Shown here: in pieces, positions 23,652-58,285 of the stretch
Numbering within the stretch: the stretch's first letter is position 1
Layout of the letters: the number at the start of each line of letters is the position of its first letter
Sequence record: LR756502.1
Strand: one strand, 5' to 3'
DNA length: 64,000 bases
Translations under genes and position numbers: made by a program
Notes under the pieces: generated by a model
Told to the model about the DNA's origin: nothing
The model's database searches: none
What the model saw: the letters and a program-made list of their open reading frames with translations, nothing else

Positions 23652-23725
23652 TAGCCCCTGCCGGATTTGAACCGGCGACCCACAGATTATGAGTCTGTCG
23701 CTCTAACCAACTGAGCTAAGGGGCT
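23652..23725 (-). tRNA. tRNA with CAT anticodon, probably Ile2 rather than Met; no encoded CCA
   Basis: AGCCCCT/AGGGGCT acceptor stem, TAGCTCAGTTGGTTAGAGC, loop CTCATAA, GGTTCAAATCC; resembles bacterial tRNA-Ile2. Confidence 0.9.
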
Positions 23726-24307: not shown

Positions 24308-24381
24308 TGATCCCGTCCGGGATCAAACCGGAAACCTTTGGTTTAGAAAACCAACGCTCTATTCAGTTGAGCTACGGAACC
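24308..24381 (-). tRNA. tRNA-Arg(TCT); no encoded CCA
   Basis: GGTTCCG/CGGGATC acceptor, TTGGT-TTTCTAA-ACCAA anticodon arm, slightly variant T loop. Confidence 0.9.
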
Positions 24382-24642: not shown

Positions 24643-26619
24643 TTATTCAGCTTTCTCGTAATGTGAGAAAACCATTGTGTAATCGCCTCGACCTGAGGTG
24701 ATAGTTCTAAGATCGGTCATATAACCAAACATCTTAGATATGGGAACATTAACCTGGATATACTTAAGGGCTCCTCGGTCACTAAGTTCGGATATTTCAC
24801 CATGTCTTTTACTTAGATCACTCACAACACCACCTGTATAAACTTCAGGTGTAATAACTCTTGCTGACATTATAGGCTCTAACAAGTAAGGCTTACAACT
24901 TTCAAGAACATTACGAAATGCTTCCTGTGCACATAATTCAAAAGAATAAGAGTCAGAATCCACAGAATGGAAGCTACCATCAATCAATCTTACTTTCATA
25001 GACTGAATAGGATAACCATGTGACCCATTATTGATAGAATTCTTAAATCCTTTCTCAATAGAAGGAATAAACTCTCTTGGAATTACACCACCACTTATCT
25101 CATTAATGAATTGTAGACCCTCAATTCCGTCATCCGCAGGTCCAATTTCAAACTGGATATCAGCGAATTTACCTCTACCTCCGGTCTGTTTACTTAATAC
25201 CTCACGATGTTTTATGGTATTTTGTAATCTTTCCTTATAGGCAACTTTAGGTATACCTTTATTAACTTCGACATTATAATCAGTTCTAAGAAGCTCTATC
25301 TTGACCTCAAGATGTAACTCTCCCATACCACTTATAATGGTTTGTCCTAACTCGGAGTCACTCCTCACAATGAAGGTAGGATCCTCGTCTGTTAGTTTAG
25401 ATAATGCAACACCAATCTTATCATAATCCAATTGAGTTTTTGGCTCGATGGCTATTGATATAACCGGATCTGGGAAGTTCATAGACTCTAACACGATAGG
25501 ATTATTAACATCACATAAAGTATGACCAGTCTTTGGGTTCTTCAAACCAACTATTGCTACTATATCACCAGCATATGCAATATCAACAGCTTTTTTAGAG
25601 TTTGCATGCATCTGGTAGATTCTGGATATTCGTTCCTTTTCTCCAGATACTGAGTTAAGTACAGTGTCTCCAGGTTCTAATTTACCATCATAAACTCTAA
25701 TAAAAGTAAGTTTACCATGTGTATCAGATACAACCTTGAAGATTAAACCAACGAATGGCTTATTCACATCACCGCCTCTATCCAACGGACTAGGGAGTAA
25801 GTTCACAATATGGTCTAATAAGGCTTGTACACCCTTATCTTTGAAGGCAGATCCACAAAGAACAGGAACAATTGTATTAGATATACATCCAGCTTGTAAT
25901 GCATTTATAATATCATCATAAGATATATCAACATTGTTCATATACTTATCTAAGATAATATCATTAACATCCGCTAGAGATTCAATCATAATATTTCTCA
26001 TGCTAGTTGCTAGTTCAATCATATCTGAAGGGATATCAGTAACTTCAATATTTATGCCTCTCTCACCACTTTGGTAGATAGCTTTCATACTGATAAGGTC
26101 AATAATACCTTCGAATTTATCCTCTGATCCAATCGGTATTTGAATAGCGATAGGGTTTGCTCCAAGCTTTTCTTTTATATCCTTAACAACGCTAAGGAAA
26201 TCAGATCCAGTTCTATCCATTTTATTAACAAATGCAATACGACTTACGTTGTAATCATTGGCTAATCTCCAATTTGTTTCAGATTGAGGTTCAACACCAT
26301 CAACTGCTGAGAATAGGAATACAAGACCATCCAATACACGGAGAGACCTATTCACTTCAACGGTAAAGTCAACGTGACCAGGAGTATCAATAATATTGAT
26401 TTGATTTTTATTCCACTCACAAGTAGTAGAGGCGGATGTGATAGTTATACCACGATCTCTCTCTTGTTTCATGTGATCCATAGTTGTATTTCCATCATGG
26501 ACTTCTCCAATCTTATGGTTTACACCTGTGTAATATAGTATGCGTTCTGTAAGCGTAGTTTTTCCGCTATCAATATGGGCAACAATGCCGATGTTTCTTA
26601 TGTTAGAAAGATTTTTCAT
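24643..26619 (-). CDS. fusA: Elongation factor G
   Basis: [72 protein letters not shown] and [20 protein letters not shown] all intact. Confidence 0.95.
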
Positions 26620-51681: not shown

Positions 51682-51761
51682 TGCAGATGAGAGGATTCGA
51701 ACCCCTGTTCCAGTGGGGTTAGAATCCACCTCGTTCCCAGAACGAATTAGGTACCACCTGC
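51682..51761 (-). tRNA. Atypical tRNA, most parsimonious anticodon CTA (amber suppressor-like); no encoded CCA
   Basis: GCAGGTG/CATCTGC acceptor + A73; canonical AGGGG-TTCGAAT-CCTCT T arm; GTGGA-TTCTAAC-CCCAC; enlarged D region; sigma-A motif at 51771. Confidence 0.65.
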
Positions 51762-53315: not shown

Positions 53316-54113
53316 TTAATTGTTTATTCTTTTGTTTGCCGCATCAATATAACTTTGCTGCATCTCAAGTCCGATGTAATTTCTATTCAATTCTTTCGCC
53401 GCCAATCCTGTAGTACCAACACCCATAAACGGGTCAAGTATTATATCTCCTGGTTTTGTTGATCCTTTTATAAAGTACTTTACAAATTCTAGTGGATATA
53501 CTGCCACATGGTCATTCGCTATTTTTTTTGATTCAGATGATATGTTTATCAAAGTTGATGGTAATGCTCCTTTTATATTTGGTGCCCAATCTTTGTACTC
53601 AGTGACCTCTTCTGATGTCCTTGCATATCTCTTTTTAAGGGAATTTTTCATTCTCTCTATTGACTTCTTAGCATACGTAACTCTCATTTCATCCAAGTTA
53701 AAATAGAAGTCTTTTGACTTTGTAAACCAAAATACATACTCAACTCTATCACCAAATCTACTTCTATTTGGAAGTCCTTTTAGTTTATTCCAGAATAACC
53801 TATCATACATCTTTAACCCAGTTTGCTTATGTAGTTCTGATATCAAATCAAAAACATATGGGTGTCTAAAACCATCTACGACTTTATCATTTATATTAAG
53901 TATAAATGATCCAGTTGGTTTAATGATCCTTTCAATTTCTTTACAATATGGAATAAACCACTCAACATATTTATCAGGATGAATGCCATCAAAGTCAATA
54001 TACTTCTTCATATTCGCGTATGGTGGGCTTGTTATTACCAAATCAACTGAATTGGAATCCATTTCTTTCATTAAATCTAGTGAGTCTCCTTGGTATATTT
54101 TATTTAATTCCAT
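53316..54113 (-). CDS. Site-specific DNA methyltransferase, beta class (probably N4-cytosine)
   Basis: VITSPPY, HVAVYP, ILDPFMGVGTT. Confidence 0.9.
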   Translation of the reverse strand: MELNKIYQGDSLDLMKEMDSNSVDLVITSPPYANMKKYIDFDGIHPDKYVEWFIPYCKEIERIIKPTGSFILNINDKVVDGFRHPYVFDLISELHKQTGLKMYDRLFWNKLKGLPNRSRFGDRVEYVFWFTKSKDFYFNLDEMRVTYAKKSIERMKNSLKKRYARTSEEVTEYKDWAPNIKGALPSTLINISSESKKIANDHVAVYPLEFVKYFIKGSTKPGDIILDPFMGVGTTGLAAKELNRNYIGLEMQQSYIDAANKRINN

Positions 54114-56233: not shown

Positions 56234-56596
56234 TTATATACCTAGTTTCTTTAATTTATTATCTCTTATTATTCCAATCAATTCATATTCTATGAAATAT
56301 ATTAACTCCTTTATAACCGAATCACCAGCCTTATTTGATATAGGATTAACATATATCTGATCAGGTGATATACCAACCGTATTACTCAACATAGAGGAGA
56401 TCCTATTTGGAATATGCCTCGAAACAGAAGTTCGAGGTTCACTATAAATCTGAGTTTGAATAAGTATTGTGTCCTTTCTACGATCAATCGTAACCAATTT
56501 GTCACTTAACTCAATAACCTTCTTAGCTATCAAATGAACCCCTTCCTCAGTTGATGCCATTTCAATAACCATTTTATCCGATGTGTATAATGCCAT
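56234..56596 (-). CDS. Hypothetical protein, C-terminal RDNKLKKLGI tag
   Basis: ORF track. Confidence 0.7.
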   Translation of the reverse strand: MALYTSDKMVIEMASTEEGVHLIAKKVIELSDKLVTIDRRKDTILIQTQIYSEPRTSVSRHIPNRISSMLSNTVGISPDQIYVNPISNKAGDSVIKELIYFIEYELIGIIRDNKLKKLGI

Positions 56597-56634
56597 AATT
56601 ATTTAATTCCTATTTAAGTTTAATTAAGTTTAAT

Positions 56635-56846
56635 AAAGGACGGCAATCGTAGTCAACTTTCTGTTTAAAACATCATTTGTCTATTGGCCTCTACCTCGGC
56701 ATAATAACGCTTCTCACACGCTAGCCTGTTTTGAGTTGCACCCTCGCTAGTAATAACGACTGTTTAGGTCTCCTAACTTAAGAAGTGGTGTGTTGAACTT
56801 CCTCACATCCATTACTGGGTAGTGCGATGTAACATCCACCGTCTTT
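56635..56846 (-). ncRNA. rnpB: Minimal RNase P RNA
   Basis: P1 GACGGTGG/TTGCCGTC; P2 ACATC/GATGT; P3 with GTAA loop; GAGGAAGTTCAAC pairing with GTTGACT (P4 with bulged U); GGGTGCAAC; TAGACAAATGAT; AACAGAA. Order matches bacterial RNase P conserved regions I-V. Confidence 0.8.
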
Positions 56847-56848
56847 TA

Positions 56849-57403
56849 TTAAACTAATAAACTCAATTTATAATCTCTATTTATATTGGTTAATTCTAAC
56901 CATTCTTTTATTTCTCTTTCAACATTAGAATGTAAATGTCTATATGATTGAAAGTTTATTTTTTTTGGGTTACCAATCCACTCGGTGAATAATTCAACCA
57001 ATTGACTAGGTAACCAACATATCTCATCTGGATCCGTTGTGAATCCTTTAGAGTTTACTATTGTTATGAAGTATAATATCTCTTTAACTTCGTGATAGTT
57101 ACCCCATTTATTTGACCATTCTAATAGAGCTTCCATTCTACGAACATCTTCTCTACCAATTCCACAAGGGAGCGATCTCATCAAGTTCGAGGCGAATATA
57201 GATGATTTGGCTTTCCTAACATCAATCATATCTTCATTAAGAATGTCGATATTTAGTGAGTCATTTTTATATGGGTCAACCCCAATGTACTTGTGCCATT
57301 TTTCTAAGATATAGTCTGCACTACACCCATCCATATTAACACCCATTGTTTCATGGAAGTTAAAGCAAAAATCTATTAAATTATCTAGTTGGGATTTAGT
57401 CAT
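56849..57403 (-). CDS. Hypothetical protein, C-terminal RDYKLSLLV tag
   Basis: Sigma-A motif at 57409. Confidence 0.7.
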   Translation of the reverse strand: MTKSQLDNLIDFCFNFHETMGVNMDGCSADYILEKWHKYIGVDPYKNDSLNIDILNEDMIDVRKAKSSIFASNLMRSLPCGIGREDVRRMEALLEWSNKWGNYHEVKEILYFITIVNSKGFTTDPDEICWLPSQLVELFTEWIGNPKKINFQSYRHLHSNVEREIKEWLELTNINRDYKLSLLV

Positions 57404-57456: not shown

Positions 57457-57606
57457 ATGAAAGATAAAGACAGAAAATATACATCACTGATGATTAAGAA
57501 GGATCTTAAAGAAATGATGGATAATAAAATAAAAGAGTTAGGTATTGAAATGTCATATTCAGCTCTTATTAAATTTTTAATTAAAAGTAGTAATGAAAAA
57601 GTGTAA
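57457..57606 (+). CDS. 49-aa ribbon-helix-helix-like protein (not in ORF track)
   Basis: MKDKDRKYTSLMIKKDLKEMMDNKIKELGIEMSYSALIKFLIKSSNEKV*. Confidence 0.6.
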   Translation: MKDKDRKYTSLMIKKDLKEMMDNKIKELGIEMSYSALIKFLIKSSNEKV

Positions 57607-58285
57607 TAGATGTAATATAGAAAAGGATATTACTGACTTTAATATAAGAAGAGCTAGTAAGGATGGATTGACACCAATTTGTAAAAGCTGCTCTAATGAA
57701 AAGGGTCGAAAATATAAATTGGAAAATAAGGAGAAAATTTCCAATTATAATAAAGAATACCGATATAATAACTACTATCCTTCTAAATATAAGGAAAAAA
57801 GTAGAGCTATATATCTAACTGATAAACGACAAAAATGGTGCAAATTATATGCGGAAAAAAATAAAGAAAAATTAAAAAGTTATAGGAGAAAATATTATTT
57901 AGATAATAAAGACTATTACCTTTCCTATCGAAGAGATAGATGTGAGAGTGATAAAGTATTTCACCTATCCATTATAATTAGGTCGATGATAGCAAATAGT
58001 ATTTCATCTAAAAAATTTACTAAAAAATCAAAAACATTTAAAATACTAGGGTGCTCTTTTGATGAATTCAAAATTCATCTTGAAAGTAAATTCGAGAATT
58101 GGATGAGCTGGGATAATTATGGTAGATATAATGGTGAATTTAATTATGGTTGGGATATAGATCATATTATACCTATATCATCTGCTATAAATGAGGATGA
58201 TATTATTAAACTAAATCACTATACCAACCTACAACCATTATGCTCATATACTAATAGACATATAAAAAAAGATAATATATTATGA
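57593..58285 (+). CDS. HNH homing endonuclease with N-terminal zinc finger
   Basis: MKKCNRC...CKSC; WDIDHIIPIS...LNHYTNLQPL...N. Confidence 0.85.
   Translation: MKKCNRCNIEKDITDFNIRRASKDGLTPICKSCSNEKGRKYKLENKEKISNYNKEYRYNNYYPSKYKEKSRAIYLTDKRQKWCKLYAEKNKEKLKSYRRKYYLDNKDYYLSYRRDRCESDKVFHLSIIIRSMIANSISSKKFTKKSKTFKILGCSFDEFKIHLESKFENWMSWDNYGRYNGEFNYGWDIDHIIPISSAINEDDIIKLNHYTNLQPLCSYTNRHIKKDNIL

Follow-up and report, generated by a model that had tools for sequence, protein, structure and literature searches.

The 64,000-nt stretch of DNA analysed here (the window) corresponds to positions 558001-622000 of LR756502.1, a 642,428-bp uncultured huge phage genome from the study that placed genomes over 634 kb in the 'Mahaphage' clade with predicted Bacteroidetes hosts, a paper that never mentions RNase P. 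The gap between ORF 56849-57403 (-) and ORF 56234-56596 (-) contains, on the minus strand, a 205-nt sequence carrying the landmarks of an RNase P RNA. A sequence-only reading had proposed a stripped-down phage RNase P ribozyme at this place, and that observation was confirmed. The elements identified, in window coordinates, are as follows.

56639-56843 (-), whole mini RNase P RNA, 205 nt, from the P1 5' end to the P1 3' end
56836-56843 (-), P1 5' strand, GACGGUGG, pairing with 56639-56646
56826-56830 (-), P2 5' strand, ACAUC, pairing at long range with 56670-56674
56804-56824 (-), P3 hairpin, with CAC/GUG outer pairs, a UAC/AU internal loop and CCA-GUAA-UGG at the tip
56792-56804 (-), CR-I GAGGAA plus the P4 5' strand AGU[U]CAAC, with the bulged U at 56796
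56787-56790 (-), P5 5' strand, CACC, pairing with GGUG at 56739-56742
56781-56785 (-), J5/7 segment CUUCU, the 5' strand of pseudoknot P6, pairing with AGAAG at 56710-56714 in the P17 loop
56746-56777 (-), P7 (GUUAG/CUAGC) enclosing a single short hairpin (GAC-CUAAACA-GUC, 56758-56770), the stub that replaces P8-P14
56735-56742 (-), P5 3' strand GGUG plus J5/15 CAA
56689-56735 (-), P15 (CUC/GAG), the L15 internal loop (AAAACAG and CGAGGUA), P16 (GGC/GCC) and the P17 hairpin (UAGCG/CGUUA), whose 9-nt loop carries the P6 3' strand
56693-56695 (-), GGU on the 3' side of L15, which reads CGAGGUA (56698-56692)
56674-56683 (-), CR-IV, UAGACAAAUG
56670-56674 (-), P2 3' strand, GAUGU
56649-56664 (-), CR-V ACAGAA plus the P4 3' strand GUUGACU, followed by AC
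56639-56646 (-), P1 3' strand, UUGCCGUC

A whole-window Rfam scan at gathering thresholds reported only two tRNAs. However, a permissive scan of positions 56550-56920 gave a match to RF00373 RNaseP_arch at 56639-56843 (-), covering model positions 1-288 end to end at 32.4 bits (E 8.6e-08 for that search), with GAGGAA, GGUGCAA, AAUG and ACAGAA aligned and the specificity-domain positions deleted. This score is far below the gathering score of 84, and standard annotation would therefore miss the RNA. Minimum-free-energy folding was no better than shuffles (z -0.17 and -1.04) and selected a local ACAUC/GAUGU hairpin in place of the long-range P2.

To determine whether the sequence has relatives, we first compared it with other phages, and a 68%-identical stretch was found in the 595-kb phage LR756511.1, where P2 changes from ACAUC/GAUGU to CUAUC/GAUAG and P4 changes an A-U pair to G-C. 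A scan of IMG/VR with the 3' signature UAGANAAAUGAU...AAACAGAA found eight distinct viral loci, and a single metagenome scan added about 30 more. The same pattern in cellular genomes returned ordinary full-length rnpB, many from Bacteroidota, with GAGGAAAGUCC and 265-380 nt between CR-I and CR-V; none of those examined was a clear mini, but not all matches were examined, so that absence from cells is not proven. Two further patterns gave nothing, as all 57 hits of GATGTGAGGAAGTTC in viral contigs were chance matches and AAATGAT...AACAGAA...G..TAC added only chance coding hits. A second viral scan that forced neither CR-V nor P2 yielded 61 new loci, of which 50 were true members by profile search (E down to 6e-48), and a BLAST search with concatenated minis found copies in all five of the largest GenBank huge-phage records (595-735 kb). 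In total, about 72 non-redundant copies, as low as roughly 50% identical and of compact, uniform size, were collected. A mini is carried by 58 IMG/VR contigs with a median of 86 kb, of which 16 are at least 200 kb and the largest is 675,678 bp.

The membership of the window copy in this family was then tested with leave-one-out nhmmer profiles. A profile built from 29 relatives produced a single hit in the 64-kb window, at 56645-56833 (-), with E 5.3e-36, and one built from 71 relatives gave E 1.9e-35. Furthermore, when all 61 columns that the retrieval patterns had forced were blanked, the latter profile still gave E 3.8e-19. Thus, the window copy is a genuine member of the family.

To assess the fold, the RNase P topology was written onto MAFFT alignments and base pairs were counted; no covariance model was built, and R-scape with a phylogenetic null was not run. 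In an alignment of 30 sequences (A1), 88.2% of cells were paired, compared with 63.3% in shuffles and 32-42% in slid registers, with 383 doubly changed cells against 125. In an alignment of 72 non-redundant sequences (A3), 87.9% were paired, compared with 62.0% in shuffles (0 of 500 shuffles) and 32-45% in slid registers, with 951 doubly changed cells against 308 and a covariation score of 0.680 against 0.202. In A3, P2 was 96.7% paired with 5 of 6 pairs covarying, the P3 outer pairs 98.1% (2 of 3), P4 97.6% (6 of 7), P5 90-97% (all pairs), P7 89% (4 of 5), the stub hairpin 90%, P15 90% (3 of 3; 100% in A1), P16 92% and P17 82%. P1 was only 65% paired overall because its inner pairs are in a shifted register in many members, but all eight of its pairs show changes on both sides. 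RNAalifold, given no RNase P prior, recovered P1, P3, P4, P5, the stub hairpin, P15, P16 and P17, and 36 of its 41 pairs show compensatory changes. By contrast, the local hairpin favoured by energy minimisation was only 44% paired.

These data confirmed the P1, P2 and GUAA-capped P3 elements, the P4 pseudoknot AGU[U]CAAC/GUUGACU with its bulged U, and the CR-IV and CR-V motifs of the sequence-only reading, as well as its suggestion that P4 keeps pairing through compensatory changes. The nested P1 and P2 enclose P3, and P2 crosses P4. Of the universal core, CR-I (GAGGAAAGUC) and CR-V (ACANAA...G.CU.A) form the long-range P4 helix, GAGGAAGUUCAAC pairing with ACAGAAAGUUGACUAC around an invariant bulged U, and CR-IV (AGNNNNAU) lies just 5' of the P2 3' strand. 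Part of CR-IV was forced by the retrieval patterns, although the copies found by BLAST keep UAGAUA(A/G)AUG, and where CR-V was not forced it reads ACANAA. GAGGAA, the bulged U, the J5/15 A (the second A of CAA, invariant in all 72 sequences), the L15 GGU and an AC before the P7 3' strand are invariant or nearly so without having been forced in every retrieval route. Two departures from the universal core were observed: the two P4 pairs 5' of the bulge vary (G-C/U-A, C-G/U-G, A-U/C-G and others) instead of being the near-universal A-U and G-C, and the copy in LR745206.1 has GAGAAA and GCAAAA where GAGGAA and ACAGAA are expected, though its P4 still pairs, so that some members may be inactive or work differently. 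A reading in which P4 is one pair shorter than canonical was rejected, since the bulged U is in the canonical position and only the two neighbouring pairs differ.

Although the best Rfam hit is to the archaeal model, the architecture is that of bacterial type A. Helix labels were taken from the Rfam structural alignment of L068, a larger copy on a 169-kb IMG/VR contig that passes RF00010 at 208 bits. Relative to it, the minis keep P5 plus a 5-bp P7, J5/15 GCAA, P15, the internal loop L15 (AAACAG and CGGGU), P16 and P17. This prompted a test of P6, the type-A pseudoknot between J5/7 and the P17 loop: 61 of 72 sequences are perfectly complementary over 5 bp, using more than 25 different sequence pairs (among them UUGCU/AGCAA, GAACC/GGUUC, CCACC/GGUGG, and CUUCU/AGAAG in the window), and P6 is 93.8% paired against 64.4% in shuffles with all five pairs covarying. 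The RNA is therefore a bacterial type-A catalytic domain with both pseudoknots. The specificity domain (P8-P14 with CR-II and CR-III) is replaced by about 20 nt with one 3-bp hairpin between the P7 strands. P18 with its GNRA loop is absent, P15 being linked to CR-IV by only five nucleotides (GCCAA), although a few relatives (loci L355, L183 and L158) carry small GAAA-capped hairpins at this position.

Other proposed elements did not hold. The CTAGC/GCTAG stem of the sequence-only reading performed no better than shuffles and is not conserved; CUAGC pairs instead with the upstream GUUAG to form P7. The putative P15 loop GTTATTAT, said to lack the GGU that binds pre-tRNA CCA, is not the L15 loop, and the GGU is present, invariant in A1 and at least 90% conserved in A3. 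This assignment rests on the position relative to P15/P16, as in the type-A model line CGGGU; in bacterial type-A RNase P this motif binds the tRNA 3'-CCA, a role that was not tested here. The idea that the 9-nt P17 loop (GGUGAGCAA) binds CCA was likewise rejected, as that loop forms P6.

The whole mini family escapes Rfam thresholds. At a permissive threshold, 13 of 20 compact minis gave only sub-threshold RNaseP_arch hits of 25-47 bits, seven insertion-bearing minis were invisible at gathering level, and the copies in the 735-kb and 635-kb phages gave nothing at E<=0.01. Conversely, several full-size versions that keep the specificity domain and P18 pass RF00010: L068 and L203, the latter on a metagenome contig not classed as viral (194 bits), both inside tRNA arrays; an unannotated gap in the isolated jumbo cyanophage MaAM05 of Microcystis (MW495066.1, about 115284-115683, 252 bits); and a faecal scaffold labelled 'unverified' (288 bits). 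BLAST of the L068-type RNA against GenBank phages found no match. The full-length phage copies look like the starting point from which the minis were reduced.

Regarding genomic context, 25 of 41 related loci and then 34 of 49 more (59 of 90) hold tRNA genes within the few kb fetched, almost all on the strand of the mini, in arrays reaching 23-24 tRNAs in 9-10 kb. The window phage has 46 tRNAs, two in the window and 44 in two same-strand arrays at about 373-391 and 401-435 kb of LR756502.1, with spacers often of 1-14 nt. In agreement with the sequence-only reading, both window tRNAs, and 41 of the other 44, lack an encoded CCA; no tRNA was detected at 51682, a third position it had named, by ARAGORN or Rfam. 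In this phage the RNA gene is not next to tRNAs, the nearest being 32 kb and the big arrays about 180 kb away. No second mini and no canonical RNase P RNA was found elsewhere in the 642-kb genome, no protein gene is conserved next to the minis (neighbours are homing endonucleases and unrelated ORFs), and a promoter and terminator scan gave nothing above the shuffle expectation.

To identify a possible protein partner, the rest of the genome was scanned for the RNR motif, which found one ORF at LR756502.1 525186-525491, outside the window. This 101-aa protein passes Pfam PF00825 (53.1 bits, cut-off 22.3) and TIGR00188 rnpA (52.5 bits, cut-off 38.35) and aligns with solved RnpA chains at E 4e-6; its own structure was not predicted. 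Thus, the claim that the phage borrows host RnpA was not supported. Homologues occur in LR745206.1, which also has a mini, and on six IMG/VR contigs, one of which, the 476-kb contig 3300032236_002285, also carries a mini, although the two genes are never adjacent. RnpA was not detected by tblastn at E<=1 in two other complete mini-bearing genomes, LR756511.1 and LR756501.1; those phages may use host RnpA or a more diverged protein.

Taken together, the earlier interpretation is partly supported: the element is a miniaturised RNase P RNA with the specificity domain almost gone, but the host-RnpA and missing-GGU claims were not upheld. The best explanation, to which we assign a probability of about 75%, is that the gap encodes the RNA subunit of a functional phage RNase P, reduced to the type-A catalytic domain (P1-P5, P7, P15-P17, with pseudoknots P4 and P6). 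In the most likely mechanism, the RNA would be transcribed with its flanking genes, fold into the usual P4-centred active site and bind the phage's own RnpA (in relatives lacking such a gene, the host's), and the complex would remove the 5' leaders of the densely packed, mostly CCA-less phage tRNAs, thereby also separating array neighbours. Our analysis establishes the homology to RNase P RNA, the conserved and covarying fold, the family membership of the window copy, the presence of an RnpA gene in the same genome and the link to tRNA arrays and large phages, whereas expression, RnpA binding, catalysis and the tRNA substrates are inferred, no expression or activity data having been available and neither pre-tRNA cleavage nor physical association with RnpA having been assayed. 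Without a specificity domain, T-loop recognition is lost. Catalysis by such an architecture has precedent, since C-domain-only E. coli RNA still cleaves (PMC5839562) and the natural type-T RNA, which has lost most of the specificity domain, is active (PMC7191817).

Among the alternatives, an RNase P-derived ribozyme repurposed to act mainly on other substrates (phage polycistronic mRNAs, tmRNA or suppressor-tRNA precursors, or host RNAs), with the lost specificity domain relaxing or changing specificity, is unlikely but the strongest rival. The specificity domain is gone, several relatives lie beside tmRNA and amber-suppressor tRNA genes, the window gene lies among ordinary ORFs, and bacterial RNase P processes tmRNA, 4.5S RNA, phage RNAs and some mRNAs (PMC11143913); yet the strongest and most general association is with ordinary same-strand tRNA arrays, and the L15 GGU and J5/15 A, which contact tRNA ends in the type-A enzyme, are retained. 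A non-catalytic decoy or regulator, sequestering host RnpA or pre-tRNAs to tilt tRNA maturation during infection, appears less likely still. The deviant P4 pairs, the altered LR745206.1 motifs and an orthopoxvirus RNase P-like RNA that was inactive in vitro and for which a decoy role was discussed (PMC3001073) could be cited in its favour, but a decoy would not need both pseudoknots, the bulged U, the J5/15 A, the L15 GGU, CR-IV and CR-V to be kept across about 70 diverged copies, and a phage-encoded RnpA fits assembly of an enzyme rather than titration of the host's. A functionless remnant of a captured host rnpB, or a chance resemblance, would be consistent with the sub-threshold score and unremarkable folding energy, but is effectively refuted by the covariation, and the leave-one-out E-values, the uniform size and the presence in all five of the largest huge-phage records also speak against it; it would require the alignments to be artefacts of the retrieval patterns, against which the masked profile argues.

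A bolder proposal, which we consider only slightly more likely than not, is that huge phages and many other large phages carry a self-sufficient, two-gene miniature bacterial-type RNase P (a ~205-nt RNA plus a ~100-aa RnpA), active on the phage's own dense, CCA-less tRNA arrays and derived by stepwise reduction of a captured host rnpB through full-length phage copies and intermediates. It would be the first active virus-encoded RNase P and the smallest natural bacterial-type RNase P RNA. RNase P is one of the two ribozymes found across cellular life, and until now the only known natural form lacking the specificity domain was in one archaeal family, a 2020 survey still listing the minimal T-type as confined to Thermoproteaceae. 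In the literature searched, no description of a phage RNase P RNA (full-length copies included) or phage rnpA was found, although subscription-only papers were not covered and a prior description is not fully excluded. A bacterial-type, phage-borne mini form with about 70 diverged natural variants would be a natural experiment on the minimum an RNase P needs and on how substrates are recognised without T-loop contacts. It would add tRNA 5' maturation to the translation-related functions that large phages bring (tRNAs, tmRNA, synthetases and release factors), and would reveal a blind spot in annotation, even full-length phage copies being unannotated in GenBank. A 205-nt RNA with a 101-aa protein is also an attractive size for structural work and engineering.

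Compared with bacterial type-A RNase P RNA (RF00010; E. coli M1 RNA, Thermotoga maritima P RNA), the phage RNA shares P1-P3, CR-I and P4 with the bulged U, P5, the 5-bp P7, J5/15 GCAA, P15 with the GGU-bearing L15, P16/P17, P6, CR-IV, CR-V and an RnpA-family protein in the same genome, but is about 205 nt instead of roughly 350-400 nt, lacks P8-P14 and P18, differs in the two P4 pairs next to the bulge, fails the RF00010 and RF00373 gathering scores and is encoded by phages, not cells. With the type-T RNA of Thermoproteaceae (RF02357; Pyrobaculum; Lai et al. 2010, as cited in PMC7191817), about 200 nt long and the only previously described natural class of this kind, it shares only the loss of the specificity domain; that RNA is archaeal, chromosomal and essential and works with archaeal proteins, whereas the phage RNA has the bacterial L15 internal loop with GGU, P6 and an RnpA partner and a phage context, the best clan hit here is RNaseP_arch rather than RNaseP-T, and the resemblance is best read as convergent reduction. 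The engineered C-domain-only RNAs (e.g. Eco CP RPR, PMC5839562) cleave with reduced efficiency, showing that the architecture can be catalytic, but are laboratory deletions rather than natural genes shaped by selection. The orthopoxvirus RNA (PMC3001073) is also virus-encoded, but comes from a eukaryotic virus and showed no pre-tRNA cleavage in vitro, and the text consulted offers no comparable covariation evidence, protein partner or tRNA context. Finally, theta (HDV-like) ribozymes next to phage tRNAs (PMC10879173) are likewise phage-encoded and tied to tRNA maturation, often in recoded phages with suppressor tRNAs, but they are small, self-cleaving, cis-acting ribozymes of unrelated fold at tRNA 3' ends and not trans-acting 5' processing enzymes.

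Outside the window, the same phage genome encodes a 101-aa RnpA (RNase P protein), whose gene is located 89 kb from the RNA gene at LR756502.1 525186-525491 (+), corresponding to positions 25186-25491 of the genome segment L343. Homologues of this protein occur in LR745206.1 and on six IMG/VR contigs of up to 476 kb. The genome also harbors, again outside the window, 44 further tRNA genes arranged in two same-strand arrays at about 373-391 kb (segment L340) and 401-435 kb (segment L341), where neighbouring genes are often separated by only 1-14 nt. Of these 44 tRNA genes, 41 lack an encoded CCA and typically continue with C-AAA after the discriminator base. Within the window, the sequence-only reading had listed a third pre-tRNA around position 51682. 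However, neither ARAGORN nor Rfam detected a tRNA anywhere in the window other than those at 23652-23725 and 24308-24381.

In the vicinity of the RNA gene, comparison of the predicted ORFs with the PHROG families revealed an endonuclease VII-like ORF (phrog_1035, E 8e-18) at window positions 57593-58285 (+) and a DNA methyltransferase (phrog_67, E 1e-61) at 53316-54113 (-), whereas the two ORFs directly flanking the RNA have no PHROG match. ORFs resembling HNH-type or homing endonucleases recur between tRNAs in the arrays that hold the minis, as observed within 5 kb of the minis at the related loci L071, L110, L185, L194, L060, L174 and L200. This reading relies on sequence appearance only; no family search was run on these ORFs.

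[quoted passage not shown] The isolated jumbo cyanophage Microcystis phage MaAM05 (274 kb) has one (RF00010, 251.8 bits) at MW495066.1 about 115284-115683 (positions 446-845 of the fetched segment L418), in an unannotated gap between two hypothetical proteins, and thus offers a cultured system for phage RNase P. In addition, a 33.5-kb faecal 'Bacteriophage sp.' scaffold labelled 'unverified' (MT835553.1) carries a full-length RNaseP_bact_a (288 bits) at positions 454-814 of segment L419, although this scaffold may be bacterial DNA or a prophage region.

The minis themselves display variation in both core and size. The mini of LR745206.1 (about 502057-502284; L356:399-626) has GAGAAA and GCAAAA where the near-universal GAGGAA and ACAGAA are expected, yet it keeps P4 paired and its phage encodes RnpA. 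It could represent a compensated core variant or an inactive copy. Some members, namely that of LR756501.1 (L355:382-612) and those at the loci L183, L158, L114 and L201, carry one or two small hairpins between P15 and CR-IV, where P18 would be, and one of these is capped by GAAA. Others (L178, L185 and L158) have 80-100-nt insertions in the stub hairpin, and the result is a size continuum from minis to full-length forms. The mini at L405:5283-5505 matches the profile only up to the P2 3' strand (model positions 3-174), and the expected CR-V and P4 3' strand are replaced by unrelated AT-rich sequence. This copy may be interrupted or truncated.

Many mini-bearing loci carry tRNA genes with a CUA anticodon (amber suppressors, designated 'Pyl' by ARAGORN), as found at L061, L155, L185, L371, L376, L378, L386, L392 (two genes), L405 and L408, and locus L059 has a UUA-anticodon 'stop' tRNA. 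These observations suggest that the corresponding phages are stop-codon-recoded. Moreover, tmRNA genes, one of them of the permuted type, lie in the same tRNA arrays as the RNase P RNAs, at L068:6297-6630, L108:1985-2291, L382:1263-1644 and L417:4710-5091, and L408:5069-5412. Finally, a sub-threshold match to the Y RNA-like family YrlA (40.7 bits, gathering score 69) was observed inside a phage tRNA array at L071:3688-3790.
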